Positions 14,994-59,686 of a stretch of DNA of 64,000 nt are shown here, piece by piece; within the stretch, counting starts at the first letter, position 1, and each line of letters starts with the position of its first letter. The position numbers and the translations under genes are program-made. The stretch covers positions 23,622,001 to 23,686,000 of the forward strand of contig OZ241826.1 of the NCBI GenBank assembly GCA_965202585.1. The letters run 5' to 3'. The notes below the pieces were generated by a model. The model was not told the DNA's origin. It searched no databases and saw only the letters and a program-made list of their open reading frames with translations. Origin of the DNA: Thalia democratica. Taxonomy: Eukaryota.

Positions 14994-16462
14994 TCATAAT
15001 CTTGGAACTTTGGTAGCGGAAAATAAAGTGAGATGTTTCGTAGGTTCGCAAGGTTTTTCATACCATTTGCCCTTTGTTGTGTCAAAAAAGAATATACTTG
15101 AAGAATGCGAGAAGTAAACAAACAACTTGTGTCCAATACTAAACGCTGCAAGTAGATAGTTTTCACGTATGTCATACAGACTAAATGAAGGTTTGAGAAC
15201 AATAAACTTTTTAGAAGTAGAATCATAAACTTCATTAATATTGGTTTCTCCTGCAATAACAAATAATTTATTCTTTACCACAACCGACTTATGATTACAT
15301 TTAGAATAGTTCATGGTTGAAAATTCTGTCCAAGTGTCGTTTATTGGGTCGTACGCTTCAACTGTATTTAATGTTCGATGGTAGTAATCATCGTCATAAT
15401 TTAAAAACCCATCATCTGTGTATTGCTTGCCACCAGATACGATTATTTTCTCTTCGAAAACACATGCAGCGGGAATTTGTCTTTTTTCAATCATCTTTGA
15501 TTTGTGCTTCCAAGAAAAATCTTTTGTATCAAACTCAATACACGAATCTTTCTCAAGGTGTTCATCGTCGTATCCACCAATCAGATAGATTTTATCCATA
15601 AAGCCGCATACAGCATAATTCTCTAAACCTTGGTCGTTTAAATCGTTTACATTAGCAACTACTTTGCAAGTGTTCGCAAGATGGTTGTACACTTCTACTT
15701 CTTTTACGATAAGTTCACGCCAACATGTTAAACCACCAAATATGTAAACATTTCCTCTGAGATAAACAACTCTAGAGTTATAACGTTTTTTTGTCAGCGA
15801 AGAAGCTATTTCTGAACTGCTAAATTGGTCAGAGTGCTTTATTTGCAGTATTCTGTCATCGATAACTTGATCAGCTTTACCCTTACCTCCAAAATACAAA
15901 ATGTCAAATGAATCGTGACCACAAAATCTTGTTGTAAAAAACTTTCTCGGTTTATTTCTATAAAAATTAAAGTTGCCTTTCAAAATATCATTTATAATCG
16001 CTAGGCAGTCTTTGTTCTTTCTAAAACAACTGTTTTCAGTAAAAATTACTTTTAAGGTTTTATCTGCTAGCAGTGGAAGACGTATTTTGTGTAGCAGCCT
16101 TTTTGAAAATTTTCCTCTGTCAATCAAATTGTAATTGATCCATTTATCAACAGCTTGGTAAACTTCAATCTCAGTTGTGACTAACAAACTTGATCTAGAA
16201 ATAATATCCTCGAGCAGATCTACTTCTAACTGTAAAAAGTTATCTGTCTCTGAAATCATCAAAAACCAGCTATCCATGTATATCAAAGCGTATTTGCTCA
16301 AAAAACAAAATATCTTAGAAAGAATAAAATGCGTGCAAATGTTTTTGTGACATGTTTTTTCTTTGAAACACTTAACTAGTTTTTGCTCTTCGTTGTTGTC
16401 TAGAACAACCTTATTTAGCTGCATGGCTTTGGTGATGCAATGCTGATGTAATGTACTTTTAC
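14994..16462 (-). CDS. BACK + Kelch protein gene 2, coding exon 2 (joins exon A 20016-19779; predicted 568 aa)
   Basis: Acceptor tttttcag|gt aaa agt...gcc ATG is in frame with the 476-aa ORF. BACK motif and ~6 Kelch blades; intact to the stop. Confidence 0.9.
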
Positions 16463-16959
16463 CTGAAAAAAATAGTTACAATGCTTTTGCTAATTGAATT
16501 TAAAAGTAAAATAACTGACTAAACATATTTTACATTTAGAGATTAAATTGACTACTTATAACCATTCTTTTACGAATATTTTTTTATATTTCAATTAACT
16601 TAATATTATATTTATTTACAGTTGACTTACGACAATATCCGAAAGACACACAATGCAAAATTCTAGAGCTATTTCAAAATAGTAATAAACAAATTACAAA
16701 CTTACTTTATTATGTAACTTTAGTAATCACCATACAAAAAATTAATTACATACAAAGTCAATTAACATAACTGATCAAAATACTAATTATTAAAGCTTTT
16801 TAAAAACAAACATTTCAACTCTAAAAATTGCATTAAGTAAATAAATCAACACTATAGTCAATCTCATTTTGTCTACAAAGGGTTTGATAGGCTTTGTATT
16901 TAAACACAATAGTTACATGAAAATTAAAACCAATCGGTTTAATTGGACCTAGGGATCTT

Positions 16960-17175
16960 TTGTTTTTTGAAAACTAATATATCAATCCCACTGAGACTAG
17001 TTTTATCCATGATCAACTCCAAGCAGCATAAAGTAGCAAAATTTCAAACTGTTGACTTAAACATCTTTTAAAATAATATTCTGACTATGTATGTTTTACC
17101 TATAATGACACCTTAATGTAAAGACCATATACCCACATTCGATCAAAGCATGGTTATATACCAATTCAAACGTTT
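16960..17175 (+). mobile_element. Residual pieces of the ancestral intronic PLE (RT and start of GIY-YIG)
   Basis: ccactgagactagttttatccatgatcaactcc...cagcataaagtagca (PLR..LSMINS..HKVA) and aaagaccatatacccacattcgatcaaagcatggttatataccaattc (KDHIPTFDQSMVIYQF). Confidence 0.55.
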
Positions 17176-17309
17176 TTTTAAAAATATCGGTTTAACAACT
17201 AGACAGCTGTAGATAAGGGCTAAAGAACAACTACCATTTTGAATGAAAAATTTTGAACTAAGCTAAAAAATAAAAAAATAAATAATAAAGTTATCAATGA
17301 CTAAAAGAT

Positions 17310-17880
17310 TTTAATCAGTAAGAACCAATATAGGCAAAGCTTTTCTGCAACTAATAGATAAACATTTCAAAGAAGACCACAAACAAAATAATAACCAGAA
17401 ATAATTGTAAAATTTCATATAGCTGCATGAGCAATATTAAGAAACTAATCCAAAAACACAATCGAAAATACTTAAAAACAAGAAACGATGATCCAAACGA
17501 AACACTTTGCAACTGCTGAACAAAAACAAATGTCCTCTTAAGAATAAATGCTAAGTTGAAAATGTGGTATATAAAGCGACAATCAAATCGGAAAACGTAA
17601 CAAAAAACTATTTGGGCTCAACGGGTGGAACTTTTAATAAAAGATGGTACAACCATATTAGTGACTTTAAAAACTATAAAGAGAACGGAACAGAATTATC
17701 GAAGTATATATGGAAGCTTAAAAATAAGAACATTGAATACAAAATAGATTGAGAAACTATCCACCACATTTGCAAAGCAAAAAACCCACAAAGCATTTGC
17801 AGTACTTGCATATTAGAAAAGGTCGCGATCGCTAAAGCAGACAGGAGGGATAATCTAAAGAAACGGTACGAACTCTTTTA
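17310..17880 (+). mobile_element. Second, different PLE: 3' fragment with GIY-YIG endonuclease, nested in the gene 2 intron
   Basis: NIGKAFLQLIDKHF...RNNCKISYSCMSNIKKLIQKHN...CNC...CPL..KC..ENVVYKATI...YLGSTGGTFNKRWYNH...ELSKYIWKLK...CILEK, with stops and frameshifts. Confidence 0.75.
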
Positions 17881-18683
17881 TTCCTGCCCGCACTTCCGAA
17901 AACTCCACTTCAAAACTTAAATTACTCGTAATACAGGTTTTATGCATGCTTTTTAATTTTTGTAACTATAATTTTCTTAAAGTAAAAAGTTTTTTTTTTT
18001 CTAAATTATTCAAGCAAAATTTCTAAATTTTGGTAACTATTACAAGCACAAAATTACTTAAATTTACAATATTCAAGTCACAATAAAATTTAGCTTGTTA
18101 AAATGCATCTTAACTTAAGCCCACTTATTATTATTAACCTAATTCTTATTTATTTGTGTTGATCTTTGATTTTTAAATTTAACTAGAATTTAAACTTTGC
18201 CAAAAATTCAAACTTAGTACCATAATTTAACTTGTTTTGTTCTAAGGTAAAAAATTGTTTTAACTGTAAGCTTTCATATAAAGCATTTGAGCGGGAATTT
18301 AAATTTTAATAACGATTAAAAGGACAAAATTGTTCAAATTTTTAATAATTACGTCACAATTAAAATAAGCTACACCAAATTCAATTAAATTTTAAGCTCA
18401 TTTCATTACTTACACTTTTGCTTAAGCAATGTTTAGTCTGTAAATTATCTAAAAGAAAAAAGAAAGCTACATACAGCTTTGTTTATTATTATTATTGTTG
18501 TTATATTGATTTTAAAACTTAGCTAAAAATTTAAGTTCTACTAAAACTCAGTCTTAATATTAAAATTTGATTTGTTTAGTTTCTTTTGTAAAGATTTTCA
18601 GTAATAATTTGATTTTATTTTAGTTTAATTGTTTAAATGCTTTTTTCCATGACTGTCACATATCTTTTTTTAGACTTATTTAA

Positions 18684-18718
18684 GCACCGACGAGGTCTTT
18701 GACCGAAACTTAGTTTGC
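18684..18718 (+). ncRNA. Minimal type-I hammerhead ribozyme-like motif (core U4>C), probably the pLTR of the second PLE
   Basis: gca CCGACGA ggtc-ttt-gacc GAAA cttaGTT tgc: helix I gca/tgc, perfect 4-bp helix II, GAAA, NUH site. Lies ~800 nt 3' of the PLE ORF on the same strand. Confidence 0.55.
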
Positions 18719-19498
18719 AAAATAAATTTTTGAAAGAATAAATATATTACTTCTCCTCCAGCAGTTGAGATCTCTCTATTTGTTTTCTTAAAACCAAAAC
18801 ATATAATAAACATTAAAACAAAAAGTATAACTATACAAAAAAAAAGTATCTAAATTTGTATAAAATAATAATATTTTTAAATAAATTTTACTAATTTTAA
18901 TAATAAGTATATTTTATCTTTAGTTCTTTATTAATGTGTTACTTTTTTGACACTTAACATTTATATTCTATTCTATTTAACAAATTCAATTAATATTTAA
19001 GCATTTTTTTACAATTAAGAAATGGTGTGGTGTCCATATTAAAATTTATTCCCGTAGCCTTTTAGAAATTTATGCCTTTTGTGCTGTAATGGATTTCTTC
19101 TTTCGAATAAAAATATTGAAATACAAGAAAATGTTTAATAAAAATTGTTTGTGTTACTACAACTTTTTTGATATTGACCTTTGCCCACATAAGGATAAAC
19201 TTGTCTTGCATTGTATTGAGGATATATTAAAGGATTTTTTAGAATAAGAATGGAATTTAATGCCATATGAATTTGAGGAATTGCTTAGTTTGTATCAATT
19301 TTAAATAAATCTAACTTGTTAAATATTAAAAAAAATAAAATATTTATTTTATATTTTATTTTTATCTTTTAAAATTCTAAATGCGTAACTAAACAAGAGT
19401 GCGTAAAGATGCGAGAGGTTACTGTAATAAAATTTTGTTTATAATGATTACTAGAATTACTATATAAGTTAAATTTATTTTGTGTTTATTGCTATATG

Positions 19499-19532
19499 TT
19501 CACTAAAGAAATAACGTGAAATATATCTGGAT
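19499..19532 (+). ncRNA. Degenerate hammerhead remnant of the ancestral intronic PLE
   Basis: ttca ctaaaga aataacgt gaaa tatatc tggat is positionally homologous to 59156-59191, which retains CTGATGA. Confidence 0.35.
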
Positions 19533-19778
19533 TTTGAAACTAGGTTTCTTTTGTATACTGCGTAAAATCAATATTGACTTCGATTACTTATAATTAAAAT
19601 TAAAACTAATTTTAAAAAATAGCTTATTTGATTTAAACTTATTATTTGTTTAACAGTATTTACCTTAACTTTACATAGATGTTTGTTTTTGAAATAGAAA
19701 ATATTTTCTCGTAAGTTTGAAGGTTTTGTTTATCAAAAACTTTATTAACATAAAAAAATTCAAATTTAATAAACATAC

Positions 19779-20016
19779 TTGGAAAGAAAAATTTCTTGCT
19801 TGCTCTTAAATTCCTAAAAGAATTCTCCGAAGTTTTTTTCTGTTGTGCTTTTGTAATACATTTTTCAACAAAACTACAAACTTTAAGTTTATTTTCATGT
19901 TTACTCAAGTGTTCAATTGCCTGTAAATCTTCTAGTTTACTTTCTTTAACAGGAGAGCTTTTCTTTTTTCTTTCTCGAAACCAGCATGAATTAAGCTTTA
20001 AATCTTTTCCACTCAT
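19779..20016 (-). CDS. Kelch gene 2 coding exon 1 (exon A, 79 aa, Lys-rich N-terminal region)
   Basis: ATG at 20016; 238 nt; donor cca a|gtatgt. Phase 1 matches the exon 2 acceptor (A+GT = Ser). Paralog similarity stops exactly at the donor. Confidence 0.8.
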
Positions 20017-21929
20017 AATTAAGTAGTGTAAAACAATTTTATAAACCTGTGTTGAAATTCTGTTGTAAAGTAGAAAAAATTAAAGTAGACTAAAGCTGAG
20101 GGCAGGGTGGCAACTTTTTAGTAAAAACAATTGTTCTATTTGGCAAAAAAAACTGTAATGTGTGACCATAAACAGTTCTTAGTCAACATAAGTTTTTGAA
20201 AATCCTTGTAAATCTTTCATTTTACTTAAGAAAATTTATAAATCTGGTTCTTCAACAAGTTAAATTAAATTTTTAAAACTACATTAATTAGTTTCAGTAA
20301 ATAAAATAGCCACATACCTTTAGGAATCGTTAAACTACCTTGAGCTATCATTTTAAAACTTTTTTAGCTTAAGTTTTCATAAAATCAAAAAAAAAAAAAA
20401 AATTCTGAATTAATCTGAGTTATCCTAAGTCATCTTAGGGTTTTCATGAACTTCAGACAATCTTTAGTTGTCCTAAATGTCTTAAATGTGTGACAATCTT
20501 GCTAAAGGTAGGAATAAAGATTTTATGTATTATAGCAAATTGAAATAAACGGAAATCAACACTATCAACAAAATCGAATTTTAAATATAATTAGTAAATT
20601 AAAGTCCAATTCTATTTGGATATTTTAAAACTAACAAAGTATATTGATAATACATACATCTCAAAGACATTAAACAATTCACAACCAGTTTTAGACTCGG
20701 GCTGAAAGTGACAAACAACTAAAAAAACGTAAGACAAAAATGATAATAACAGTATTAATAATAATAACCATATTAATAGTTGTTGTAAAATTATCATAGT
20801 AAAAGACTTGTGAGAATTTGCTTAAAAAAAAACTTAAAATTTCTATGTAATAAGGTTATTAAAAGTTTGCTTTAAGTTACATTATTCTTACGAAGAAATA
20901 ATTATAGTTAAACTCCAGTAAGTAATAATAAACATATTTATAGTAACATTGTACTTTTCAGTTTAAAAACAAAGGCTTTCATGTATTTACTTATACCAGG
21001 ATTTCACATAGTGGGCAAAGAATTTATCCTGACATCTCAATAAAATTTAGTTTTAAATTTTCAAGCTTATTGTATCAATACTACTAGAACACTTTAAAAC
21101 TATACCAACCTAAAAATATAAAATTCAATTTTTCAAAATTTATATTTTTTAAATTATTAACCTATTAATTAATAATAAATTTCTGCTTAAACTAAGTTTT
21201 AAATAAATAATCTAAATTTGTTTCCAAATGTAAATTACAACTATTATAGCTAGTAAAAATTAGTAAATTTTAAGATTAATTTTCGACGAACCCTTTTTAC
21301 TAGTTTTTAATAAAAAAATTATAAAGTTTCTATAAGATTTTAACAAAAACTGAAAATAGTATAAGTGAGATTTATTTTTTATTGTTATAAGTTTTTACAA
21401 CCTGTATAACACACTTTTCTTTATAACCTAAATACTAATATTTACTTAAAGTTTAATAAATATAGTGCAATTATCAACAGTTTTTAGGAGAAATCTTCAG
21501 AATGCTGATTTTGCAATGTCAATTGAACACTGAATACTTATTAAAAGTTTATATGTTTAAAATTTTAATACTACGCTTAAATGATTTTTGTGAATGTTTG
21601 TTAGACTTTTGGATTGAAAAATGGCAAGCCTGTGTCTAAATATTAAAAAAAAAATAAAATCACAAAACTATAATCTTATAAAAAAAGTATCCTCTTCAAA
21701 TATTAAGAAAGTTTTACTTTAAATAACAATTGAAAAAAACATTAACTAAAATTTTGTGACTTAGTATATATAAAATTTGACTTTTTAACAGAATAACAAT
21801 ATAATAGGTACTTTAAAAATAAAGAGGCAAAATTATAAATTTTCTTATCAAAAAAATCACAAAAAAATAACCAACACAGTAACATTTTTGAATATTATTA
21901 ACTGCAAAAATTAGCTTCTAACAAATATT

Positions 21930-34850: not shown

Positions 34851-36233
34851 CAGTGCTTCTGAAATAGGGTTCCGCGGAACCCTAGGGTTCCGCGACGTCT
34901 CTCAGGGGTTCCGCGAAGCCATTCGAAATTTAAAAAAGAAATTTGAAAAAAAAAACATAAATTATAAAACTTCAAAAAAAATGGAGCACATAAAATGGAA
35001 AACATATATAATTATAGCATTTATTGATCTGCTTAGTGTATATCAAGCGGTAGGACTTTAAATGGGTATTCATTATTAATAGGTGTCCTGGTTACGCAAA
35101 TTTTTGCAAACTTTTGAATTTCTATTTTTAGTGAAGTCATGAAAATACTGGTATTATCACTAAAGCAAACAATGTAGGAGCAATGAACTTACACATGCAA
35201 GGGAAGCAAAATTTCATTTTTGTCATGACAGACAAGATTGAGTTGTTTAAAAATAGAATTAACTTTAATAGAAAAGAAAAAGGTTAGCAATGGTAATTTT
35301 GCGATGTTTCACTGGTTTGATGAGGCCCATGAAAAATGCATAGAGTTCATCTTCTCTGACGAATTATACAACCACTTTGATCTTTGGTCTATAAAGTTTC
35401 AACATTATTTTCCTGAAGATGTTCGCATCGGAAATTTATGGATTTTGAATCCTTTTATGTTTGATATTGCTTCAGAAGAAGTGAATCTTCCTACAGATAC
35501 AGTAAACGAATTGCTGCAACTATCTGAAGAGAGCAATTTAAAATTGAGTTTCAAAGGGAAGGAGCTTTTAGATTTTTGGATATGTGCAATATCAGAGTAC
35601 TCCGTCTTAGCAAAGCGCGCAGTAAAATTTATTTTACCATTCACCACCACTTATCTTTGCGAGTCCGGCTTTTCGCATGTAACAAACATTAAAACGAAGC
35701 AAAGGAACTGTATGCTGACTCCAACCTTATCTACCTGTCTCCGTCTCAGTCTATCTAAAATCCAGTCGCGCATTGACATGCTTCTTGCTAAGAGACAAGT
35801 TCAAGTTTCGCACTAAATGTTTTTTATTTAATTTTCGTTAGGCATTTTACCTGTTTATTACAGTAATCTGTGAATTCGATTAGGTTCATGTTTATTTCGT
35901 TATTGTTTGTAGCTCTCATTTGTTTTTATTATGCAAGGAATGATTTTTATGACGTTGCGATTAATCATGTTTGCTTTCGTTTATTTATTATAGAATCATA
36001 AAATACCTATTGCCTCTGGCGCACTTTGAGTTTGACTCGACTTAATACTATTACAATTGGTATGATTTCTGACAATGATATAGTTTTGCTAAAAAATTAG
36101 TTTTTCACTGAAATTCTTTTGGTTTTGAGTAAATATTAAATTAAACATTTATGTAAAATTAAATTAGGGGTTCCGCGGAAAAGTTGAAATTAGGAAAAGG
36201 GTTCCGCCACTAGAAAAAGGTTCAGAAGCACTG
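34851..36233 (+). mobile_element. hAT Buster/Charlie-family transposon, internally deleted (1383 bp)
   Basis: 13-bp perfect TIR cagtgcttctgaa; perfect 8-bp TSD ccctagtg (34843-34850 / 36234-36241, NNNTANNN); subterminal GGTTCCGC repeats at both ends. Confidence 0.95.
35238..35816 (+). pseudogene. C-terminal fragment of a Buster-type hAT transposase (dimerisation domain; SCAND3/ZBED5-like)
   Basis: FWI...EYSVLAKRAVKFILPFTTTYLCESGFSHVTNIKTKQRN...LRLSLSKIQSRIDML...QVSH is the typical Buster C-terminus; the N-terminal and catalytic parts are missing. Confidence 0.9.
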
Positions 36234-37630: not shown

Positions 37631-39111
37631 TTATAGTCGAGGAACTTGGATAGCAGAAAACAATGTGAGATGTTTTGTAAGTTCGCTATGTTTCTCACAC
37701 CATTTACCTTTCGTTGTGTCAAAACACAAAACATTTGATGAGCGCCTCAAATGAAAGTATAGTTTGTAGCCGGTGTTAATGGCTGTAAAAAAACTTTTTG
37801 AAGTTATGTCGTACAGTCTCAGTTCTGGTTTAAGAACAGTGAACTTTCTAGAAGTAGAATCATAAACTTCGTTTACATTAGTCCCTCCTCCTATAACGAA
37901 TATTTTATTCTGAACTACAACTGACATATGGAGACACCTTGAATAGTTCATGGTCGGAAATTTTGTCCAAGTGTCGTCAATCGGGTCGTATGCCTCAACT
38001 GTTTTTAATGTTCGGCGGTTTCTCTGATCGTAATGATTAACAAAGTCAAAAATTTCATCATCTTCGCTTCGTATGCCACCAGATACAATAACTTTTTCTT
38101 CGAAAACGCATGCAGCAGGATAATCTCTTTTTTCGATCATATTAGATTTGTTTTTACATGAGCAATCTTTCGTATCAAACTCTATACACAAATCTCTTTC
38201 CAAATTAATTGTATCCCATCCTCCAATTAGAAAAATTTTGTCCAAAAAACTGCATACAGCATAATTCATTAATACATGGTCATTTATATATTCTATATTG
38301 GCAACCACTTTGCACGTTTTTGTAATATGGCTGTACATTTCTACTTCTTTTATGATACCATTATCATCAAAACCACCAAATATGTACACTTTTCCCCTGA
38401 GGTAAACCGCTTTAGACTCATAACGCTTTCTTGTTAATGAGGAAATTATCTCAGGTTTTTTGTAGTCGTCATAATTCGTTATTTTCAATATTTTTGCACT
38501 AACAGGTTCAACATGACTTTCAAAATTTTTAGCACCTCCGAAATACAAAATGTCAAACGAATCATGACGGCAACATCTTGCTGTGAAAAACCTTCTCGGT
38601 TTATTTCTATAAAAATCAAAGTTGCCTTTCAAAACTTCACTTAAAACCGAAAGTGAATCTTTGTTCATTCTAAAACAACTTATTTTAGTTAGGATGGTTT
38701 TTAAGGTTTTCTCTGCTAATAGTGGGAGACGTATTTTGTGTAGCAGCCTTTTTGAAAATTTTGCTCGTTCAATTAAGTTGTAGCTTATCCATTTATCAAC
38801 AACTTGGTAAATTTCAATCTCAGTTGTGACTAACAAACTTGATCTAGAAAGAATTTCCTCGAGCAGATTTAATTCCAATTGTAAAAAGTTATTTGTCTCT
38901 GTAATCATCAAAAAACAGCTATCTATGTATACCAAAGCGTCTTTGCTCGAAAAACAAAATATCTTTGAAAGAGTTAGATGCATACGATAGTTTTTGTGAA
39001 CCATTTTATCTTTAAAACATTTAATTATTTTTTGCTCTTTATTGTCGTCTAAAGCTACCTTATTTAACTGCATGACTTTAGTAATGCGATGCTCTTGTAT
39101 TGTAACTTTAC
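37631..39111 (-). CDS. BACK + Kelch protein gene 3, coding exon 2 (joins exon A 44190-43953; predicted 572 aa)
   Basis: Acceptor attttcag|gt aaa gtt aca...gtc ATG is in frame with the 480-aa ORF; intact BACK and Kelch blades. Confidence 0.9.
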
Positions 39112-39699
39112 CTGAAAATAAATGTTAAAACGATTTTTGTTAATTAAATTTAAAACGAATATATATTGACTATAAAATTTATACATGCAGAAATTATATG
39201 ACTATTTATTAATCAGCTAATAAATTATTTTTTATTATTCAATTAAAATAACATAATTAGTAACTTTAAACATTTGTAATTGGTTATAAACAGTATACAA
39301 AAGACACTATATGCAAACATTCCTAAATATTTCACGCTAGTTTCATAAGCAGATACATTAAAAATGAATAGTTGGAGTTATATAGTGACTGTAGTACTCA
39401 ATATAAACATATATTAGTAAAATGAAAATTCAGTTACACAATACTAAACAAAATACTAAACATTGTAAATGATTCATCAGAAACATGTAGACTCCTAAAT
39501 CATCATTAAGTAAAAAAAAATAATAACAAACTTGAATTGATTTTGCCTACAAAAGATAGGTTTTTTATTTAAAATACATATAGCTTCCATTCTAACTAAG
39601 TCAAAGACGTTACAACAAAATCTATTTATCTTAAATGTTTTTAAATTAATTCTTTTAGCAAAATTTTAATTATTCACCAAATGTTCCGCTTTTGTAGAT

Positions 39700-39900
39700 C
39701 TTTATATTGCGTTCATAGTTGTACTAGAGTTAATTAATTTTTATTTTTCAGCTAAATTCAAAAAATTATCAAGCAAGACGTTATATATACTTTTAGCCTT
39801 TTCCTTAGGTGTCTAGTTGTAAGACCGTTATAGCTATTGTAGCAATAGTATTTGAATTGATTTATATCCATGATTATTAAATGTAGGTATCTGGTATTTG
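39700..39900 (-). mobile_element. Inverted PLE GIY-YIG remnant in the gene 3 intron
   Basis: Minus strand reads QIPTF...SYNGLTTRHLRKRLKVY (GIY-YIG YIGxTxRxLxxR motif). Confidence 0.6.
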
Positions 39901-40229
39901 CCTTACATAAGGTTTACAGCTGAAAAAGTAGAGCTTTTTGTTACTTAATATACTTTTATAAATACACATATTATTTTGTTAATGTATAGAATTTTTAAGG
40001 TGTGTTAACATTTTCCGGTGTAATTTTCTTAATTCTTTTCAAAGAATTTATGTGAGATATAATCGTTTTAATTACTAGCTCAGGAGGGTGACCATTTACA
40101 TACAACAGTGTCATATTGTAACTATTTTTTCTTTAATGAACTTATATGAATACATTTTATGTGCACGATCACACTAAGTCCTGATAAGATTGACTTTTTG
40201 TTTTAGGAAATAAAGAGTTCAATTGAATG

Positions 40230-41341
40230 CCATAAAGGTGAGAAAAACTCTAGTTGTTACTAATTCTGATAAAAGTAAATGGTTGTGCTATTTTAGATAA
40301 GCAAGACCATCTGGAAAAAATGCAACTAATTAACAATATTTCAAAATTTAAACTTTTAGGTTCAACTGACAAACTTTATAACACTGATAAAGTAGAAAAT
40401 AATATAGTCAAGTTCTTAAAACATCTAATTTTAAATAAGCAAAAGAGCCAAGAGATTTATGAATTTATTTAATCAGTTAGTACAACTAGACCTTAAATAT
40501 ATGGTCTTTCATAAATTTATGAAAAAAAATATCACTAAGATCAATTTTATCGATGATCAACTCTACGCAGTATAAAATAGCAAACTTACTAAACTGGCAA
40601 CTTAAAACTGTTATATATTAATATTCTAATTATGTTAATTAGGATTTATTCACCTTTGTGGTAAATTTTAGATATATTTATGCTAATAGCACATTCACGG
40701 TTTCGTTTGAAGTAAAAAATTGATGAAAAATATATAATTTAATTAAAGAGCTGATATTTACACACTATAAAGTTTTATGAGATTTAAACATCTTCATCAA
40801 GTAAAGAAAATTTTGTTAAATTGCTACCACTAGTGATGTAAGGTTCTCTTTCAATAATGTAATACAAATTGAAGATGTAGCTATGAGATCTTGTTTTGGC
40901 TTTACCTTTGCCAATACTTTTATGGGCTTGTCAGAGTCAAAAATCATCTCTAAGGTGCAAGATGGAAGCAATTACTCAAAATGAATTTTTTGTTATAAAC
41001 AAAATTCAACAAGAACTGGATAATTTCTATAAGTTGTCAAATAAATAGCATGATTTAATAAAGTTCACCATTTAAAATGAACAAAATAATGAGATATTCT
41101 ACTTTGATGTACTGGTGAAAAAACAAAAATCAGATTTAATTGCTAATGTGCTACGAAACTTTTACTGGTGATTATCTAAATTTTTTGTCACTTTGCTGTC
41201 TGAAACTATAAGTCAATCTAAAAACAGAACACTGTGTCATTGTGTATATTTAATATGTTCACCTGAATTTTCTGAAGAAAAATTTAATAACATTGAGGAC
41301 TTGTCGTTAGAAAACGGATATCCTATTGAGTTAGTAAGTAG
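40230..41341 (+). mobile_element. Decayed PLE RT in the gene 3 intron (continues at 43153-43430 after the LTR insertion)
   Basis: VVTNSDKS.GCAILDKQDHLEKMQLINNISKFKLL...SMINSTQYKIANLLNWQL...DVAMRSCFGFTFANTFMG...FDVLVK...CSPEF...NGYPIELV. Confidence 0.75.
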
Positions 41342-43152
41342 TGTAACCTATGGATGTAAGTACCTTTAGATCACAAAACCTAATAATACTAAATGCTATG
41401 ATTCAATAATACTTAGGGCTACACTATATTAAACTAGGCATGACATGAGTTAACATATTTTATACAAAGAACAGTTGCAAACACAAGCACAAGTATATAA
41501 AGAACATCAAATTTAGAAATCACTTGAAATGTGAGTCAAAAATATTACACAAGATTTAATCAACCAAAAGTATACAACAAAGTAATATTTAATTTCATAG
41601 AGTGTAAATAAGAAATACTTATAAAAACAACACTCGTAAAAAAAACACTTGTGTTTAAAAAACACAAGAACACAATGTAAATGTCTATTCTTCATTGTCA
41701 CGTTTACTGCAGCAGGCTGTGGCTAGAGTCCCCCGTCTGTCTGTTGTATCAGCTTATTTAAAACATTCCATAACTCAATGTTAATTTAGGATTTCTGGTA
41801 TAAAATTTATTTTTTCCTTGTGTCAACTGTATTAAAATTGCATCAATATGAAAATTGACCTTACGAGCTTTCTTTTATAGCTTGAATAAACTTTTAGCTC
41901 ATAACTTTCAACCAAATTTAAACAGTAATCAAGTGCAACTTGATATCTTGTTACAGTTTCTCTTCTCCACTGTTGAAAGACAAATCGTCACTCTACTTCT
42001 CCTCTGCCTTTTTGTTTGGAAGATAATCAACACCTTTACTTTATGAACAAGAAAAAAGTTACACATATCAAAATTTAAAATGGTCTCAAAACTACTCATG
42101 TTTTCATACAAGATTTAAAGCAAACTAGAAAATAAATTCAGACAATTTAATACAAATGGTAATTTAGTTTTTAAAATTTTATGTTTTTAATAATCAAAAA
42201 AAAAAGTTAATGTGTTTTACTAGCTTGAACAATTTACTTTAACTTCTGAAACAATAATAAACATTGTTCATTCTACTATAAAGATTGCAGTTTTGAAAAA
42301 CAGGTAAATGACAAAAATACAAAAAAATCACTATAATCACTATAATATAAACTCAAAAAATTTTCATCATGTTACTGCTCTTTGCTGTCTTAGTTATTAA
42401 TAAACTTTGTTTTCTATCGTTCTATTAAGATTGAAGAGCCTTAGATAAATTTAATATTACTCACTTTCAAATAAAATTGGTCACCACTTTAAAGAAGACT
42501 TATTTATACTTATACCATGTTAGTTTTTTTTTCTAACCCCTATTCTTTCTGGTTATGGGTACAAACTCAAAGGCTTTTAAATGGGCATACGGTAAGTGTA
42601 AGTATTGCTACTTAAAAATTAAATGCACACCTTGTTGTAAAATTTCTCTAAATCTACTACTAAAAAAAAGGCAGTGTATAACAAAAATGACTAAAATATA
42701 TGATTGTGAGTAAAAACTGTGATAAATACTGCTTTCAAAATAAAAAGTGATACACTAGTAGAACTTATTTGGGTAAAATAATGTTTTGGTAATATTTAAC
42801 TGATACCTAAAAGACTGGTTATCCTTTAAACGAGGACGCTAATTTTAACCTATGGGTGTAACTTTATAAAACACAAGAAAACAATATAAATGTCTAATTT
42901 CATCGTCACGTTTACTGCAGCAGGCTGTGGCTAGAGTTCCCCGTCTGTCTGTTGTATTAACTTATATAAAGCATTCCATAACTAAATGTTGCATCAGGGT
43001 TTCTGGTATGCATTTTATTTTTTCCTTTTGTCAACTGTATTAAACTTGCATCAGTATAAAACTTGACCTTGCAAGCTTTCTCCTTAACTTTTAGCTCAAC
43101 ACTTCCAACCAAATTTAAACAATAATCAAGTGCAACTTGATATCTTGTTACA
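41342..43152 (-). mobile_element. Internally deleted LTR retroelement (Gypsy-like by its 4-bp TSD), nested in the PLE
   Basis: Termini tgtaac...gttaca. LTR copies at 41342-41955 and 42844-43152 (the second with an internal deletion). TSD gtag/atag. Polypurine tract ggagaagagaaa directly before the 3' LTR on the minus strand. The PLE sequence rejoins across the insertion, as seen uninterrupted at ~58645. Confidence 0.75.
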
Positions 43153-43952
43153 ATAGAACTTGTAAATCTCAACTAAAGTTTTTGAACAGAGATAAAGAAA
43201 TTAACCAAAAAAAATGTAGTCTTCTTAAAAGTTCCATAGATAAATAAAAGATTAGTATATTAAGAGAAGAAAATTAGCAATTAATAAACACTGATTTTCA
43301 GCAACAAAACCTAGAGTAATTTTTACATCAAGTCCTATGTTGACACCTGGAGACATAGATCAGATACCTACGTTTGTATATATAAAATAAAACATGGTTA
43401 TATACCAACTCAATTGTTATTGTGATAATGTTGTAACGTGTTTGACATTGTCAAAATCGAAGCTAAGTGTATTTTAAATACAAAAATTTTACCCTTTCTA
43501 AGCAAAAATGATTTAGTTTTGAGAGTTGCCTTTTTACTCATTGGTGTTTTTAATGTCTAGATGTTTGTCATAACCAATTACAACATTTAGTATTTTGATT
43601 AGTTTTAAGGAATATACTGTGTATGTTATTGCTAGCTATCACAATTTCTAAAAAAGTTAAATTTCTTTTTTATTAAATCTTTGTATAAACTGTAGAAAAT
43701 AGGGTAAAATATCTCTGGATATTGGCATAAAGTGTCTTTTGTACATTGTTTAAAGTTAATATTAACTTCGACTGTTTGTTTATATTGCTTATAACTACTA
43801 CGTCCTATTTTGTTCAACTATTTTTTATTAATCAGTTATAATTCAACTAAGTTGTTTGTTTCTCAAATAAAAAATATTTGCTTGTAAACTTTAAAAATTT
43901 TGTTTATCCTAATTTACAAAATAAATAAAATACTAAGTATTATTAAACATAC

Positions 43953-44190
43953 TTGTATACGTATACTCCTTACTTGCTGTTGAATTCTTAAAAGCATTTT
44001 CCATGATTTTTTTCTGTTGTGCTTTTGTAATACATTTCTCAACAAAACTACAAAATTCAAGTTCATTTTCATGTTTACTCAGGTGTTCAGTTGTCCGTAT
44101 ATCTTCTAATTTAATTTTTTTGACATCAGCTGTTTTGTTATTTCTTTCTCTCAACCAGTACGAATTAAGCTTTAAATCTTTTCCACTCAT
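43953..44190 (-). CDS. Kelch gene 3 coding exon 1 (exon A)
   Basis: ATG at 44190; 238 nt; donor aca a|gtatgt, phase 1. Confidence 0.8.
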
Positions 44191-45149
44191 TATTAAAGTA
44201 GTTTAAAACTATTAATTGAACCTGTTTAAAATTTCTATGATAGAATAATTAAGATAAAAGTAGACTGAAGCTGGGTTGCAGATCTTTGAGTAAAACTGTT
44301 CTAGGTGATAAACAAACTGTCCTTGTGGACTAATTTTTTTGAAAATCCTTATACAACTTTTTTTTTACTTTATAAAATTGATAAAATTAGATTTTTCAAC
44401 AAATTAATTTAGAAAATTACAAAAATTGAAACTAAATTAACTATGTCTAATTAAAAAAAAAATTTTAGCCACAGATTTTTTAAGAATCTTAAAACTATCC
44501 TGAGTTTTTTTAACTGTTTTGGCTTGAGTTTTACTGAACTTAAAAAAAAAATCTTAATATTTTTAGTTATCCTGAGTTTTTCTTGGTCATTTCAGGATTT
44601 TCATGAATTTCAAAGTATTTTAAGTTATCCGGAATGTGTTAAATATGTAACTTACCTGCTAGAGGTAGGACTAAAGATAATAAATATTATAATAGTATAA
44701 AATAAAAGGAAACTACTACTTTTAAGAAGATTGACTTTAAAATAGAAATTAAAAGAAATTAAAGTTAGTCTATTTAGATTGTTACAATTGACTAAGTGAG
44801 TAAATTTAAACAAATATTTCTTTAATTAAGGCTTTAAGTTCTTTATAGTCAGCTAAAAATTAAAAACAACTAAACAAGCGTAAAAAAGTTATTAGCAACA
44901 TTATTAGTTGTTGCTAAATCACAGTAAAAGATATGAGAGAGGTACTTAAACTTTCAATTAATTTTATATTTCAGGGAATTAAGTGCAGTTAAAATTTAAT
45001 GGTGTAATTGTAAAATGTAATTATGATCATATTTATATTAACACTGTACTATTTAGTTTGTTAACAATGCAAAACCTTCATGTATTTACTTAAACCATAA
45101 TTCCAAAAGTAAACCAAATGTTCCCTTTGGGCCTTAACAGAAATTTAAA

Positions 45150-51131: not shown

Positions 51132-52040
51132 CAGTGTTTCCTCGCTAATACGGCCAAGTTGGGCAAGTTTTTTTTGAAAATACGGCCGGTTTTGCCTTTG
51201 GCCGGATAAGAACAAAATATCGCTTTTTTTACAAACTATCTACCTTAGTTATATTATGAATGTATATAACAAAACGTACAATAAAAATTCACTTAATTTA
51301 ATTTATTTTACTTTTTTCAAAGAAAAAAGAATTAAAACAGACAAAACTAAACGAAACAAAATTTTACAAGTTGATAATTAATGGAAAAAAACTACGCTGT
51401 TAACACTTTAACTAAATTAAGAATTTTTTTTGAAAAAAGAAAGAATGGAAGATTGTTTTACCGTACTTTCTCGTTTCTTAGCAGAAAACTCACGAAATTG
51501 GATGAGTTTAGACACATCTTCAGGTGTGGCTTCTGTTTGGCAACGATAGTAAGCTAAGTAATCGTCCATTTTCTGCATGGCTTCAGCATGAGAAAATGGA
51601 CGCCTAGAAGGCTGGGAAACACCAATTTCATCTTCAACAACTTCAACAGCCTCTTTTTCGTTATCCCCAGTAACCAGTTCAACAATTCCTTGCTCGTCCA
51701 TATGCTCATATCCAGGACCATGGCAACTCATCAATCTTTGAATATCATCTTCTGTATATGTGATATTTAATCTCGCAAATTGCTGTACAAACTCGTTATC
51801 TTGAGTTTTTTCTGAAGGGTCTATATTTTGCATGGAAGAGCTTTGCTGTAATGGCATTAATTTCTTCCATGAGTTTCTAATGGAAGAAGGCTTTACTATA
51901 CCCCAAGCAGATTAAACGGTGTCGACAACTTTTGTCATGTCGATTATTTTTAAAAAATCTTCAATTGTGAAGGTTGATTGCGATATAAGATTATTTAAAT
52001 ATGAGTAGGTGTAATAAACGAACGAACGTACACCTTTGCA
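51132..52040 (-). mobile_element. pogo/Tigger-type (Tc1/mariner) transposon, 3' fragment with one TIR
   Basis: TA + cagtgtttcctcgctaatacggcc terminus at 51130-51155. Minus strand SAWGIVKPSSIRNSWKKL...acidic tract...KQSSILSFFKK is the Tigger/pogo transposase C-terminus; in-frame stop upstream. Confidence 0.8.
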
Positions 52041-54971: not shown

Positions 54972-56473
54972 TTAAAGACACGGAGCAGTAATAGCAGAGA
55001 ATCCTGGAAAATATTTTGTTTGATCGCTAGGTTTTTCACACCATTCATTCTTTACTGTATCGAAGCAGTAGATACTTGATGAGCCTTCAAAACTGATAAA
55101 CATTTTATGCCCAAAACTAAATGCTGCAAAAGGATTTGTTAGAGCTATATTGTACAAAGTGAGTGGTGGTTTGAGAACAGTGAACTTTTTAGAAGGAGAA
55201 TCATAAACTTCGTTGATTTCAGTTCCTCCTGCGATAACGAATAACTTATTCTGAACTACAATTGACTTGTGATTACATCTAGAATAGTTCATTGTTGCAA
55301 ATTTTGTCCAATTGTCGTTTATTGGGTCGTATGCTTCAACTGTGTTCAATGCTTGATAGTTTTCATTACCGTAAAAATTAACAAAATCAAGAAAATCATC
55401 ATCTGCGTATCGAATCCCTCCGGATACGATTATTTTCTCTTCAAAAACACATGCATCAGGACTTTCTCTTTTTTCATTCATCTCAGATTTGAGCTTCCAA
55501 GAGTAATCTTTTGTATCGAGCTCTAAACAGAAGTCTCTTTCATCATTATCAAATTCATCCCATTGTTTTTCTAAGAATCCACCTATCAGATAAATTTTGT
55601 CCATAAAGCTGCAGACAGCATAATCACTATTTTCATAGTCAAATATATCTCCTATATTAGCAACTACTTTGCACGTTTTTGAAAGATGGCTGTACATTTC
55701 TACTTCTTTTACTAAGTGCCCTTGCTCATCAAAACCACCAAATAAGTATATGTTTCCTCTAAGATAAACCGCTTTAGAGTAATAACGTTTTTTAACCAAA
55801 GAAGAAACTATCTCAGTAACTTTATAGTCGTTGGAACGATGTAATTGTATTATTTTGTCACTAACAGTTACACCAAACATTCTAAATTTTTTGATACCTC
55901 CAAAATACAAAATGTCAAACAAATCGTGATCGCAGCATCTTGCTGTAAAAAACTTGCTCGGTTTATTCCTATAAAAATCAATGTCGCCTTTTAAAATATC
56001 ATTTACAACCTCATGGGAATCTTTGTTCTTTCTAAAACAACTATTTTCAGTTAGGATCGTTTTCAAGGTTTTATCTCCTAAAAGTGGAAGACGTATTTTG
56101 TGTAGCAGCCTTTTTGCAAATGTTCCTCTTTCAATCAAGTTGTAATTGATCCATTTATCAACAGCTTGGTAAACTTCAATCTCAGTTGTGACTAACAAAC
56201 TCGATCTAGAAAGAATCTTTTCAAGCAGATTCACCTCAAATTGCAAAAAGTTATCTGTCTCTGAAATCATCAAAAACCAGCTGTCCATGTATATCAAAGT
56301 GTCTTTACTCGAAGAACAAAATATCTTTGAAAGAGTGAGATGCATGCAAAAATTTTTGTTACTTATTTTATCTTTGAAATATTTAACAAGTTTCTGCTCT
56401 TCTTTGTCGTCTAAAACCATCTTATTTAGTTGCATGTCTTTGATAAAGCAATAGTCTTGTAAACATTCTTTAC
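54972..56473 (-). CDS. BACK + Kelch protein gene 4, coding exon 2 (joins exon A 59686-59449; predicted 579 aa)
   Basis: Acceptor gttattcag|gt aaa gaa at the conserved position (the ORF-track MCYS is intronic); intact BACK and Kelch. Confidence 0.9.
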
Positions 56474-56999
56474 CTGAATAACACATGATTTTAATGATAT
56501 TTTAAGAATGCAAACATTTAAAGTTAAAAATCTACTTAAACTATACAAGAGACACTCAGTGTAGAACACAAGTATGTTTTACATTGTTTTTATCAGTGAA
56601 TTAAAAAAAAAATACAAGTTAAATTTAATCTATTTAGTAACAGTAGTTAGTTCTCTGTTAAAACAATTTAACATAATTAAAAACAACTAAATAAAAAGTC
56701 AATTACATAAAACTAATCAAAATACTAGTTATTAAAGTTGACTATATATAAACATGTAAAAACAAAAAGAGCATTAAGTAAATAAAGCAACACTATAGTT
56801 ATGTTGTTTTTTTTTGTCTACAAAGGGTAGGTTCAGTCTTTAAAATACATATAGTATTATTTTTAACAAGGTAATACATGTTATAATATTTTTTGATAAT
56901 CTTAAATCTCTCCAATTTGAAGTTTCAACACAATATTGATTGATCACTAGATAATCAACAATAGCAGATATAACAAGTTTATTCTTAATTTTATAACTT

Positions 57000-57210
57000 C
57001 TTTACTTTTTTTTTCAGCTAAATTTAAAAACTTATAAATGCAAGCACATATATGTTCTTTGATCTTTTTTTTAGTTGTCTAGTTGGAAAACCAACATAAT
57101 TATTGTTGTAATAACATGTTAATTGGTATATAACATGATTTTATCAAATACAATTATCTAATGTTTACCTTCAGTTGTCAACATAGGACTAGAGATAAAA
57201 ACTACTCTGG
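57000..57210 (-). mobile_element. Inverted PLE GIY-YIG remnant in the gene 4 intron
   Basis: Minus strand DK.CVIYQLTCYYNNNYVGFPTRQLKKR, across one frameshift. Confidence 0.65.
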
Positions 57211-57499
57211 GTTTTACAGCTTAAAAGTTTAAATTATAAGTTGCTTATTATTTTAACTAAGTAAACCTTTTTTTAAATTATGTATGAAATTTTCTTTTCT
57301 GGTCAAATTTCCTTGTCTATATTTAAAACATGAAAATGAAGTTTATTTGCTCTACTTTCTAACTCAGGGAATTAACATTACTATAGTAAAGAACAGTCTT
57401 AACATAATTAATTTTTTTTTCACAGAATTCCTATGAAAAGATTAAACGTGCAAAATGACACTGTGTCCTGCTTAAACTGACTGCTCCGTTTTAAGGATA

Positions 57500-58900
57500 T
57501 GAAAAGGTTAAATAACAGCTTTAAAAATGAAAAAAAAGTTATTACAAAGGCTAATAAAGGCAATGCCTGTGTTATTTTAGTTATGCATTACTATCGGAAA
57601 AATGCATTTTTGCATTTATGATATTTCAAAACCTAAATGTTTAGTATAAGTTAACAAACTTGACAACACTAACAAGTTAGAAAACAATACAGTCAGGTTT
57701 CATTAATATTGTGTTTCACGGAAAAAAATTAGGAAAGAAATAGGTTTAATTAGTTTAAAAACGTATCTAAAGAAATTGGTTAAATTAGACTTGTGATCTA
57801 TGGTCTTTTAAAGTTCATTAGAAAGCAATCCAAATGAGGTAAAATTTATCAATAACTAACTCTCCGCAGCATAAAGTAGCAAAACTTCTAAACTGTCTAC
57901 TTGTATTCTGTACTGGAACAACGGTTAGAATATTATTTTTATTATGTAATCAAGGATTCATCACATTTGTTGGATAAGTTAGAACCTAAAAGCTAATAAA
58001 TACTTATGGCTTTGTTTGACGTCTAAAATTTGTTCACAAATGTCCTACTAAAATAAATAGTTGATCTTTTCAACAAAAGTTGTATGAACTTGAGAAACCT
58101 TTGATTATCTAAAGAAAATTTTGTTAAATTGCTAAAGATTGTCACTAGTAATGTAAAGTTCTCTTTTAATGCTATAATGCTCAAACAGTATGATGGTGTC
58201 GCTAAGGGATCTCCTTTAGTCAGTATCTTTATGGGGTTCTTAGAATTAAAAATTATCTTTAAGATTCAATAAAGAATCCATTACTTTAGGTATGTAGATT
58301 ATTGCTTCATTAGAGCCAAAAATGAAAAAAAACGGAATAATTTCTACTAGTTATTAAATAAATAGTAAAATTTAATTATATTTACCACTAAAAAAGAACA
58401 GAATAATGAGTAATCATAGCTTGATGTACTGGTTATAAGGCAAAATACTGAAGTTGTTACTACCATTTTCAGAAAGAAAACTTTAACCGGTAATTATATA
58501 AAATTTTAGTCACATTGCTGTCTGAAACTATATGTCAATCTAATAACAGTACACAGTGTCATCTCGTATATTTAATCTGTTCACCTGAATTCTCTATTGA
58601 AGAAATTAATAACCTAGAAGCCAATGGATGTCCTATTGAACTAGTGAGTAGAACTATTAAATCTCACATAAATCGTTTTAAAAAAAGATCAGGAAATTGG
58701 ACAAGAAAAAAGAGTTGTCATTTTGAAAGTACCGTACATAAATAAAGGATCTGTTTATTACAAGAAAAAATTTGAGCAACTATAGACCACTTTTGAGCGG
58801 CAAAACCCAGAGTAACTATTAACTCAAGACCTAAATTGACACATTTAGGCAAAGACAATATACCCAATTTTGATAAAAGCATAATTATATACCTTTGGAA
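57500..58900 (+). mobile_element. Decayed PLE RT/thumb and start of endonuclease in the gene 4 intron
   Basis: VITKANKGNACVIL...NSPQHKVAKLL...KQYDGVAKGSPLVSIFMGFLEL...YFRYVDYCF...FTTKKEQNNE..LDVLV...RKKTLTG...NGCPIELV...LKVPYI...KDNIPNFDKSIIIY. Confidence 0.8.
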
Positions 58901-59155
58901 AGATTTAAGATGACTTAAAATGTTGTAACATGTTTAATTTATTTAAAATAGAACCAATAGGTATTTTAAATAGAAAACCTACCCCTTTTAGGCAGAAATA
59001 TTTTAATTCTAGTGTTGCTTTATTTACTTATTGCTTATTTTGGTGTCTTATTTTCAATAATTAGTAATTCAATTAGTTATCTAGAGTTAACATTGTATGT
59101 TGTTAATAGTTGTTATACTAATAAGTTAAATCTATTTTTTTATATATTGCTATGT

Positions 59156-59191
59156 ATCCACTGATGAAAACAGCGTGAAATATCTATGGAT
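59156..59191 (+). ncRNA. Hammerhead ribozyme remnant at the 3' end (pLTR) of the intronic PLE
   Basis: atcca CTGATGA aaacagcgt GAAA tatcta tggat: intact core and 5-bp helix I (atcca/tggat); helices II and III are weakened. Confidence 0.55.
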
Positions 59192-59448
59192 GTTGGCACA
59201 AAATGTCTATTTAATATTGGTTTAAATTAATATTTACATTAAATATTTGTTTTTAAAACTTAAACTAAATACAAAAGAGCTCATTTAAAAATGTTTCACT
59301 TACTAATTGTTGTAACTGGTTTTTTCAACTAATCTTAAAAAATTGGTTGTTACTTTATTTATTGTTTTTTTAATAGATAGTATTTGCTTGTAATATTTTT
59401 TTTTATCAAAAACTTTACAAACAATCACAAAAATTAAACTAAACGTAC

Positions 59449-59686
59449 TTGGATAAGAGTATTTCTTGCTTGCTGTTAAACTCATGAAAGCATTTTCTTT
59501 AATTTTTTGCTGTTGTGCTTTTGTAATAAATTTTTTGACAAAACTACAAGCTTCAAGTTTATTTTCATGTTTACTTAGGTGTTCAGTTTTCTGTAAATCT
59601 TCCAACTTTCTTTTTTTAATATCAGCTGTATTCTTATTTCTATCTCTCAACCAGTATGGTCTAAGCTTTAAATCCTTTTTACTCAT
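59449..59686 (-). CDS. Kelch gene 4 coding exon 1 (exon A)
   Basis: ATG at 59686; 238 nt; donor cca a|gtacgt, phase 1. Confidence 0.8.

Follow-up and report, generated by a model that had tools for sequence, protein, structure and literature searches.

A tandem family of putative two-exon BACK-Kelch genes with a basic leader and no recognisable BTB domain in Thalia democratica

The best-described proteins resembling those discussed here are the KLHL and KBTBD adaptors of CUL3 (KLHL3, KLHL11, KBTBD2 and KEAP1), which have in common with them, by profile and fold comparison, the last BTB helix, the 3-box, BACK and a six-blade Kelch propeller. Contact with the cullin repeat is expected to be made by the BTB domain, in which the alpha3-beta4 loop wraps around that repeat, and loss of the contact with the CUL3 N-terminal extension costs KLHL11 30-fold in affinity (PMC3597819). 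A BTB-less BACK-Kelch architecture is itself already known. Human KLHDC7A joins a BACK-like region to Kelch without a BTB, and its domain order is like that of the present family; the likeness drawn here is one of architecture. The poxvirus BTB-Kelch proteins, such as vaccinia A55, C2 and F3, likewise form lineage-specific, multi-copy Kelch families.

The present family departs from each of these. Unlike the KLHL and KBTBD proteins it is without the BTB core, which carries the dimer interface and the CUL3-gripping alpha3-beta4 loop, and has in its place an unrelated basic leader of 72-79 residues, predicted to be helical and encoded on an exon of its own. The N-terminal region of KLHDC7A is long and different, whereas the present family has expanded extensively in tandem and carries a first exon of its own. 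The vaccinia proteins keep the BTB, while the present genes are cellular and intron-containing. Below, we describe the exon-intron anatomy of these genes, its conservation, and a domain content in which no BTB is recognisable.

Gene structures in the window

The stretch analysed, hereafter the window, comprises 64,000 nt of Thalia democratica (GCA_965202585.1, OZ241826.1, 23,622,001-23,686,000, forward strand), and all positions are given relative to it. Each of the three minus-strand genes presents, on direct reading, a phase-1 GT donor and a polypyrimidine-AG acceptor. The features are as follows (a slash marks the exon-intron boundary).

Gene 1
19779-20016, minus strand: exon A; ATG at 20016; donor CAA/GTATGT after 19779; 79 codons plus 1 base
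16463-19778, minus strand: intron, 3.3 kb; positions 19325-19379 masked in the later searches
14994-16462, minus strand: exon B; acceptor ...TTTTTCAG/GT at 16462; stop included; last BTB helix, 3-box, BACK and six Kelch blades
Gene 2
43953-44190, minus strand: exon A; ATG at 44190; donor after 43953
39112-43952, minus strand: intron, 4.8 kb, with a dispersed repeat and an inverted-repeat pair inside
37631-39111, minus strand: exon B (BACK-Kelch); acceptor at 39111; the copy used for folding
Gene 3
59449-59686, minus strand: exon A; ATG at 59686; donor CAA/GTACGT after 59449
56474-59448, minus strand: intron, 3.0 kb
54972-56473, minus strand: exon B (BACK-Kelch); acceptor at 56473
Further copies
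8958-9192, plus strand: orphan exon A, 235 nt; donor AAA/GTATGT
1646-3150, plus strand: fourth exon B; acceptor ...TTTTATAG/GT; frame broken near the 3' end

In all three genes exon A is 238 nt long (79 codons plus 1 base), the split codon A+GT encodes Ser and the residues MQLNK follow 12 codons after the acceptor, so that the predicted spliced products are of 568, 572 and 579 aa for genes 1, 2 and 3. An earlier sequence-only reading of this DNA had given these figures, including the shorter orphan exon, and they can be read directly. Its further claim that similarity among the copies ends exactly at the donor does not hold: DNA similarity falls from 80% in exon A to 66% over the first 100 intron bases, and stands at 57-59% across the 300 bases upstream. 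Its description of introns filled with transposable-element debris stands for gene 2, the intron examined, where positions ~41342-42860 belong to a dispersed repeat of at least 40 copies at 82-90% identity, and where an inverted-repeat pair occupies 39440-39617 and 43429-43606.

No exon B lies downstream of the orphan exon A within the window. The exon A belonging to the fourth exon B lies beyond the window edge and contains an in-frame TAA; together with the broken frame of its exon B, this marks the fourth copy as one that is probably decaying.

Domain content of the two exons

Exon B carries, after the last BTB helix, the 3-box and BACK followed by a Kelch propeller of six blades. Pfam recovered BACK (PF07707) in four of four window copies, with E-values of 3e-17 to 4e-16, and Kelch_1 at 1e-19 to 1e-28. 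The exon B profile matched the BTB-BACK structure of KLHL3 (4hxi, residues 135-273, 3-box helices included) at E 4e-18, and vaccinia A55 BTB-BACK (6i2m) weakly, at E 0.002. Comparison with hhalign against BTB-BACK-Kelch gave 98.8%, the alignment running from exon B residue 23. Judged from such alignments, exon B begins inside the C-terminal end of a KLHL BTB domain and retains its last helix and the 3-box. An AlphaFold2 model of exon B of gene 2 alone (pLDDT 84, pTM 0.85) consists of a helical N-terminus and a propeller, and Foldseek placed this model with the Kelch domains of KLHL17, KLHL3, KLHL12 and KEAP1 at target TM-scores of 0.80-0.84. In a word search with exon B the nearest named matches were distant BTB-Kelch proteins of 20-22% identity.

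Exon A offers far fewer points of comparison. Searching 1.84 billion proteins with an exon A profile (HMMER) returned 26 short unspliced ORFs and no other relatives, an outcome in keeping with the earlier suggestion of a lineage-specific family. Pfam yielded no domain in exon A, a PDB sequence search gave a single chance-level match (E 0.44), and a search of the ESM Atlas scored 0.87, below recognition. In the searches made, the exon A-type family is known from the Thalia democratica genome and marine metagenome contigs only, which supports a lineage-restricted distribution at the level of sequence similarity. The exon is Lys/Arg-rich with few hydrophobic residues, carries a K-K/R-x-K/R stretch and a conserved F-V-E-K-C motif, and is predicted to form one long continuous basic helix without strands. 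It had been described as a novel domain; the predicted form is a single long helix and not a globular unit. The K-K/R-x-K/R stretch looks like a nuclear localisation signal, a likeness to a short consensus only. In gene 3 the basic stretch reads KKRKLED.

The absence of a recognisable BTB from exon A, from the introns and from the rest of the window is supported by several searches. PF00651 found no match at E <= 1 in either exon, and none of the 150 scored genome matches from a PF00651 scan fell in the window. The ORFs that contain a BTB elsewhere in the genome belong to other families, whose BACK/Kelch similarity to exon B is weak at most. A BTB-coding exon hidden in an intron, the finding that the sequence-only reading had named as evidence against itself, was nowhere recognisable in the window, and paralogs with short introns (212-345 nt) have no room for one. 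That exon A bears no recognisable resemblance to a BTB, as first noted, is upheld. The accompanying idea that the BTB was replaced applies to the BTB core, which is absent, and not to the last BTB helix and the 3-box, which are still found in exon B.

A domain may nevertheless be eroded past recognition. Were exon A the remnant of an N-terminal BTB core, with the intron falling inside old BTB coding sequence, its position would be as expected, and exon A together with the 22 residues of exon B that precede the alignment would amount to ~100 residues, near the size of the missing BTB part. The best hhalign placement of exon A, itself insignificant, even pairs the FVEKC helix with a helix from the end of a BTB. 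However, that comparison reached a probability of only 0.4% (E 0.17), Pfam found no BTB in any exon A at the threshold given above, and a Lys-rich, hydrophobic-poor segment predicted as one strandless helix is not what such a remnant would suggest. BTB-BACK-Kelch ORFs that are intact in this genome, moreover, run through the corresponding region without an intron. We consider this origin unlikely, at about one chance in seven.

Equally unlikely, in our estimation, is that the proteins continue to act as CUL3 adaptors by way of the last BTB helix, the 3-box and the BACK groove, with the leader helix standing in for the BTB in dimerisation. The 3-box region of exon B aligns with those of KLHL3, KLHL11, KBTBD2 and KEAP1, and in KLHL11 the CUL3 N-terminal extension sits in a groove to which the last BTB helices, the 3-box and BACK all contribute (PMC3597819). 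Since the last BTB helix and the 3-box are retained, some CUL3 contact may persist. Nevertheless, the part of the BTB that grips the cullin repeat, the alpha3-beta4 loop, is absent here, and the family has no dimerising BTB strand or helix.

Age, constraint and pairing of the exons

An array of this kind might consist mostly of silent or decaying duplicates whose frames are open through youth and not through function. The broken copy and the orphan exon A in the window lend this some weight, as do stops in several genomic copies and an exon A pN/pS of 0.67, which is not far from neutral. Yet synonymous divergence between the window genes is at least 0.6, a value from which the copies are judged to be old, and all three have nonetheless kept both exons, their splice sites and full frames. 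Constraint on exon A is weak, yet its pN/pS is significantly below 1 (p 3e-4, 16 non-overlapping pairs), and for exon B the ratio is about 0.32-0.46. The architecture is, in addition, retained down to 32% identity. We therefore regard a largely silent array as improbable, somewhat more so than either of the explanations weighed above.

Genome-wide comparison supports a real intron joining exon A to exon B, as far as conservation of sequence can indicate. Exon A is present in 38 copies, nearly all of them followed, 0.2-5.7 kb downstream and in the same orientation, by a BACK-Kelch ORF. A first-pass scan of the genome gave 5231 exon B candidates. Thirty-three of the 38 are free of stops, against a chance of ~7e-4 (an arithmetic estimate) that a 79-codon frame would be open at 25% GC. 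Of the 31 close exon A copies examined, 29 have a phase-1 GT donor at the matching site, and all 12 close loci that were followed into exon B have a polypyrimidine-AG acceptor; the identity of the split codon differs among close loci (Ser, Arg or Asp), its phase remaining constant. The phase-1 acceptor extends to all 12 distant paralogs (32-42% identity), nine of which are preceded by an MS... exon that ends in a phase-1 donor, and a tenth weakly so. A conserved ACAG/GT about 30 nt ahead of the ATG may be a spliced-leader acceptor. Exon A spans 72-79 codons across the family, and the lengths observed among copies (238, 235, 226 and 217 nt) differ by multiples of three. Distances in exon A track those in exon B (Mantel r 0.89, p <= 2e-4, 16 genes), no swapping of exons between family members being seen among these genes, and a Tara Oceans metagenome scaffold carries the identical two-exon layout. 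In many paralogs I, L or A stands in place of the Met of MQLNK, which would leave exon B alone without a start, and the 12-13 codons from the acceptor to that Met are open and conserved. The conserved donor, acceptor and phase, with near-universal pairing, support the original proposal that the small ORFs are the first exons of the kelch genes.

That they are instead micro-genes in their own right, upstream ORFs, or promoter DNA that is non-coding but conserved, beside kelch ORFs that run intronless from MQLNK, much as metagenome gene callers annotate them (two separate ORFs), is highly improbable in view of the unconserved Met, the open codons before it, the family-wide splice signals and phase, length changes in threes only, and exons nearly always paired and diverging together.

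Proposed account and implications

We propose that exon A and exon B together form a single protein-coding gene in each unit. The start codon would come from exon A, along with a leader that is rich in Lys and Arg and probably helical, and a phase-1 GT-AG intron, 0.2-5.7 kb long and probably enlarged by transposon insertions in the window copies, would link it with an exon B that runs from the equivalent of the last BTB helix through the 3-box and BACK to the six-blade Kelch propeller. The ancestor would have been a BTB-BACK-Kelch gene that lost the BTB core, and with it the surface for dimerisation and the chief contact with the cullin repeat, before expanding into tandem arrays in a tunicate lineage, the taxonomic placement being settled with mitochondrial HSP70. 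The protein is presumed to be made and to be incapable of KLHL-style dimerisation and CUL3 docking, which would leave it a role, possibly in the nucleus, in binding targets through the propeller, with the leader helix offering a different contact. The CUL3-independent, decoy or new-partner roles suggested in the earlier reading are hypothetical. To this account as a whole (two-exon genes, loss of the BTB core, tandem expansion and a propeller that binds targets outside KLHL-type CUL3 docking) we assign a probability of roughly 80%.

A more specific version, in which the leader is a lineage-born basic helix with a nuclear signal that ties diverse Kelch propellers to a non-CUL3 partner, is speculative and in our view unlikely. 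If true, a pelagic tunicate would possess a large family of nuclear proteins that bind targets or act as decoys outside the cullin system, possibly serving as a recognition or defence repertoire.

If expressed, the family would constitute a natural experiment, in which a Kelch receptor has been deprived of its BTB core, has kept the 3-box and BACK, has gained a new first exon and, within a single animal lineage, has been multiplied into dozens of copies or possibly thousands. Such a family would help to isolate the roles of BACK and the 3-box and would show how a new first exon can be recruited. For annotation, the consequence is that prokaryote-style or naive calling yields two ORFs, the kelch one starting at a Met that is not conserved. 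Among 1.84 billion representatives, no spliced full-length protein was found by an exon B word search or by the HMMER search with the exon A profile, and the matches in both searches were separate, unspliced short ORFs only. Four marine metatranscriptome runs contain 6-7% of the words of gene 1.

Two-exon genes in the window and across the genome

The window consists of AT-rich eukaryotic DNA (22-31% GC) and contains four kelch ORFs with 61-65% mutual identity. Pfam assigns a BACK domain (E about 1e-16) and Kelch repeats to each of the four, and a BTB domain to none. There are also four small ORFs beginning MS(G/K/R)K, three of which precede the minus-strand kelch ORFs by 3-5 kb in the same orientation. 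A sequence-only reading had joined these pairs into the genes g1, g2 and g3, each with a small first exon (exon A) and a second exon encoding the BACK-Kelch body (exon B). Its splice coordinates and arithmetic can be read directly in the sequence and are right.

Kelch ORFs, exons and splice sites of the window (a slash marks the exon boundary)
14994-16424, minus: kelch ORF of g1, of the 476-504 aa class
37631-39073, minus: kelch ORF of g2, of the 476-504 aa class
54972-56486, minus: kelch ORF of g3, of the 476-504 aa class
1612-3150, plus: fourth kelch ORF, similar to those of g1-g3
20016-19779, minus: exon A of g1, donor CAA/GTATGT; exon B from 16462, acceptor TTTTTCAG/GT
44190-43953, minus: exon A of g2, donor CAA/GTATGT; exon B from 39111, acceptor TTTTCAG/GT
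59686-59449, minus: exon A of g3, donor CAA/GTACGT; exon B from 56473, acceptor TATTCAG/GT
8958-9192, plus: orphan small ORF of exon A type, standing alone

Exon A measures 238 nt in all three genes; its last A joins GT to encode Ser, 12 codons follow before MQLNK, and the predicted spliced products are 568, 572 and 579 aa long. The fourth exon B (1646-3150, plus) lies on the strand opposite to g1-g3, with acceptor TTTTATAG/GT and its final ~27 residues in a different frame, while its exon A, 3.4 kb upstream and outside the window (C1:23620007-23620219), contains an in-frame TAA. This copy is probably decaying.

That the small ORFs are first exons and not separate genes is borne out by exon pairing, splice signals and phase throughout the family. 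Within the 802-Mb assembly, where the window occupies C1:23622001-23686000, exon A of g2 returned 38 matches, 33 of them stop-free (the calculated probability that a random 79-codon frame is open at this base composition is about 7e-4), and exon B returned 5231 first-look candidates and about 88 scored matches. Comparison of the two match lists paired nearly every exon A with a same-strand exon B located 0.2-5.7 kb further downstream. Donor and polypyrimidine-AG acceptor occupied homologous positions in 12 fetched close loci, where the shortest gaps between exon A and exon B matches were 212-345 nt. The split codon varies among close copies (A+GT Ser, A+GA Arg, G+AT Asp) and phase 1 is constant. 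A phase-1 GT stands at the homologous donor place in 29 of 31 copies, among which exon A is 238, 235, 226 or 217 nt long, so that all length differences are multiples of three. Distant paralogs (32-42% identity) share the same phase-1 acceptor in 12 of 12 cases, so that family members taken to be intron-free may likewise have an overlooked leader exon; an upstream exon that starts MS and runs to a phase-1 donor of GTAAG type is recognisable in nine of the twelve and weakly so in a tenth. In many paralogs I, L or A stands in place of the Met of MQLNK, which rules this Met out as the start of exon B.

Distances for exon A and exon B co-vary over 16 genes (Mantel r 0.89, p <= 2e-4), and this sample shows no exchange of first exons between members. 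Exon A shows a pN/pS of 0.67 (16 non-overlapping pairs; binomial p 3e-4), and exon B, at 0.32-0.46, is under tighter constraint. Close relatives occur in marine metagenomes only, and a homologue on a Tara Oceans metagenome scaffold has the same exon A, a CCAA/GTATGT donor at nt 238 and the acceptor ...TTTTCCAG/GT. A mitochondrial HSP70 exon from this genome shares 84-87% identity with Clavelina, Phallusia, Ciona, Botryllus and Styela, against 81% for the best named full-length hits outside the tunicates, which are insects; together with the marine metagenome relatives this marks the genome as that of a tunicate, probably a pelagic one. Four marine metatranscriptome runs (2016) contained 6-7% of the words sampled from the g1 region 14900-20100, which may come from exon or from intron repeat. 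By comparison rather than from RNA, the two-exon gene may be regarded as established; the exon-intron anatomy of the family is solid and of use for annotation.

The BACK-Kelch body and its leader

Searches and folding were performed by single exon, with exon A and exon B treated separately. A profile of the first 170 residues of exon B matched solved BTB-BACK structures, namely KLHL3 (4hxi, residues 135-273; E 4e-18), KBTBD2 (2e-16), KLHL11 (2e-15), KEAP1 (9e-14) and gigaxonin (2.5e-10), with alignments running from residue 20-23, in the helix ending the BTB domain, through the 3-box and BACK. Comparison with BTB-BACK-Kelch ORFs by hhalign gave 98.8%, starting at residue 23. AlphaFold2 models exon B of g2 as a propeller preceded by a helical stalk (pLDDT 84, pTM 0.85), and Foldseek matched exon B to the six-blade Kelch domains of KLHL17, KLHL3, KLHL12 and KEAP1 (target TM about 0.8). 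These profile and fold matches indicate that the gene retains everything from the last BTB helix onwards and lacks the BTB core. The proposed replacement of BTB is thus correct for the core and too sweeping for the last helix and the 3-box.

Exon A belongs to no Pfam family, has no sequence relative in the PDB (best E 0.44) and gave no ESM Atlas lead above noise. A full HMMER search of 1.84 billion representatives with a profile of 27 copies matched 26 proteins, all of 55-135 aa; the 12 that were read all continue past the donor into the intron, and so represent ORFs called without splicing from genomic or metagenomic DNA. AlphaFold2, run on the alignment, predicts one helix, unbroken from residue 3 to residue 78 (pTM 0.37); its pLDDT averages 78 and peaks at 93 over a conserved F-V-E-K-C-I-x-K-A-Q. 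The novel Lys-rich domain initially described is indeed Lys-rich and without known relatives, and would be better regarded as one long predicted helix. It contains 13-17 Lys, is positively charged overall (+4 to +12 net), and includes a K-K/R-x-K/R stretch (KKRKLED in g3), which we take to fit a classical monopartite nuclear signal.

The missing BTB core and CUL3

The absence of a recognisable BTB from exon A, already remarked upon from sequence, agrees with the Pfam result and with a profile-profile comparison against BTB-BACK-Kelch proteins, which gave a probability of 0.4%; we consider it improbable that exon A originated as a degenerate BTB. Nor do the introns appear to conceal BTB exons. 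A genome scan with PF00651 (150 of 225 candidates scored) placed no BTB in the window, nor in the cluster at C1 23.6-23.8 Mb, and the introns of the short-intron paralogs are too small to hide further exons. In g2, in-frame stops between the ATG and a conserved ACAG/GT motif 30 nt upstream exclude a further coding exon ahead of exon A. Single-ORF genes with a BTB at other places in the genome are members of other families, with at most weak BACK/Kelch similarity to exon B.

Many single-ORF genes of ~500-580 aa carry an N-terminal BTB of VKVRFN... type (for example C1:30669200, 22074300, 41870800, 95903000 and 33395000). BLASTP with exon B found no match to them at E <= 1, so they look like a second expanded BTB family.

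In the KLHL11-CUL3 structure it is the BTB domain that makes the expected cullin-repeat contact, and its alpha3-beta4 loop wraps around the cullin repeat; the BTB dimer is the basis on which BTB-Kelch proteins dimerise, and the CUL3 N-terminal extension has its groove in the 3-box together with adjacent BTB and BACK helices (PMC3597819). The BTB-cullin contact and the BTB dimer have no recognisable counterpart in the family described here, whereas the 3-box groove is partly retained. Residual CUL3 binding seems unlikely. The propeller would bind targets without a KLHL-type dimeric CUL3 ligase being formed, and the basic helix of exon A may provide localisation or a new contact. The BTB-less BACK-Kelch architecture itself is already known: a review lists human KLHDC7A as lacking a BTB and having a predicted BACK domain (PMC12035522). 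A full-text search found no paper uniting kelch, gene family expansion and tunicate. The family is a lineage-specific, expanded, two-exon BACK-Kelch family in which an orphan basic helical leader replaces the BTB core.

Introns, flanks and neighbouring features

Mean pairwise DNA identity among copies is 80% in exon A, 66% over the next 100 bases and 57-59% over 300 bases upstream. Similarity had been said to end exactly at the donor; it does drop there, but for DNA it persists over the following 100 bases. The view that the introns are filled with transposon debris holds for that of g2, the one checked, in which a ~1.5 kb repeat (about 41342-42860) has at least 40 dispersed copies of 82-90% identity, spread over all large contigs (with 2385 first-look candidates in the genome), and lacks any ORF that reaches 70 aa. 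Paralog introns of about 210-345 nt show that the long introns are secondary. An inverted-repeat pair near both ends of the g2 intron (39440-39617 and 43429-43606; 178 nt, 73% identity) may mark the two ends of an element that was inserted long ago.

Between g1 and g2, a 192-aa ORF (35238-35816, plus) is a transposase relic; it matches the hAT dimerisation domain weakly (E 0.001), short of the Pfam cut-off. A 146-aa acidic ORF between g2 and g3 (51417-51857, minus) has no Pfam match.

All four exon A copies of the window are preceded, about 70-100 nt before the ATG, by a block GTTGCAACC...CAGCTTYAGTCTACTTT, and three of the four have an acceptor-like ACAG/GTT about 30 nt before the ATG.

Sites of the upstream block
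20040-20100, minus: before exon A of g1
44215-44280, minus: before exon A of g2
59715-59780, minus: before exon A of g3
8860-8930, plus: before the orphan exon A

Tunicates trans-splice, and the block or motif could be a promoter element, a 5'UTR element or a spliced-leader acceptor.
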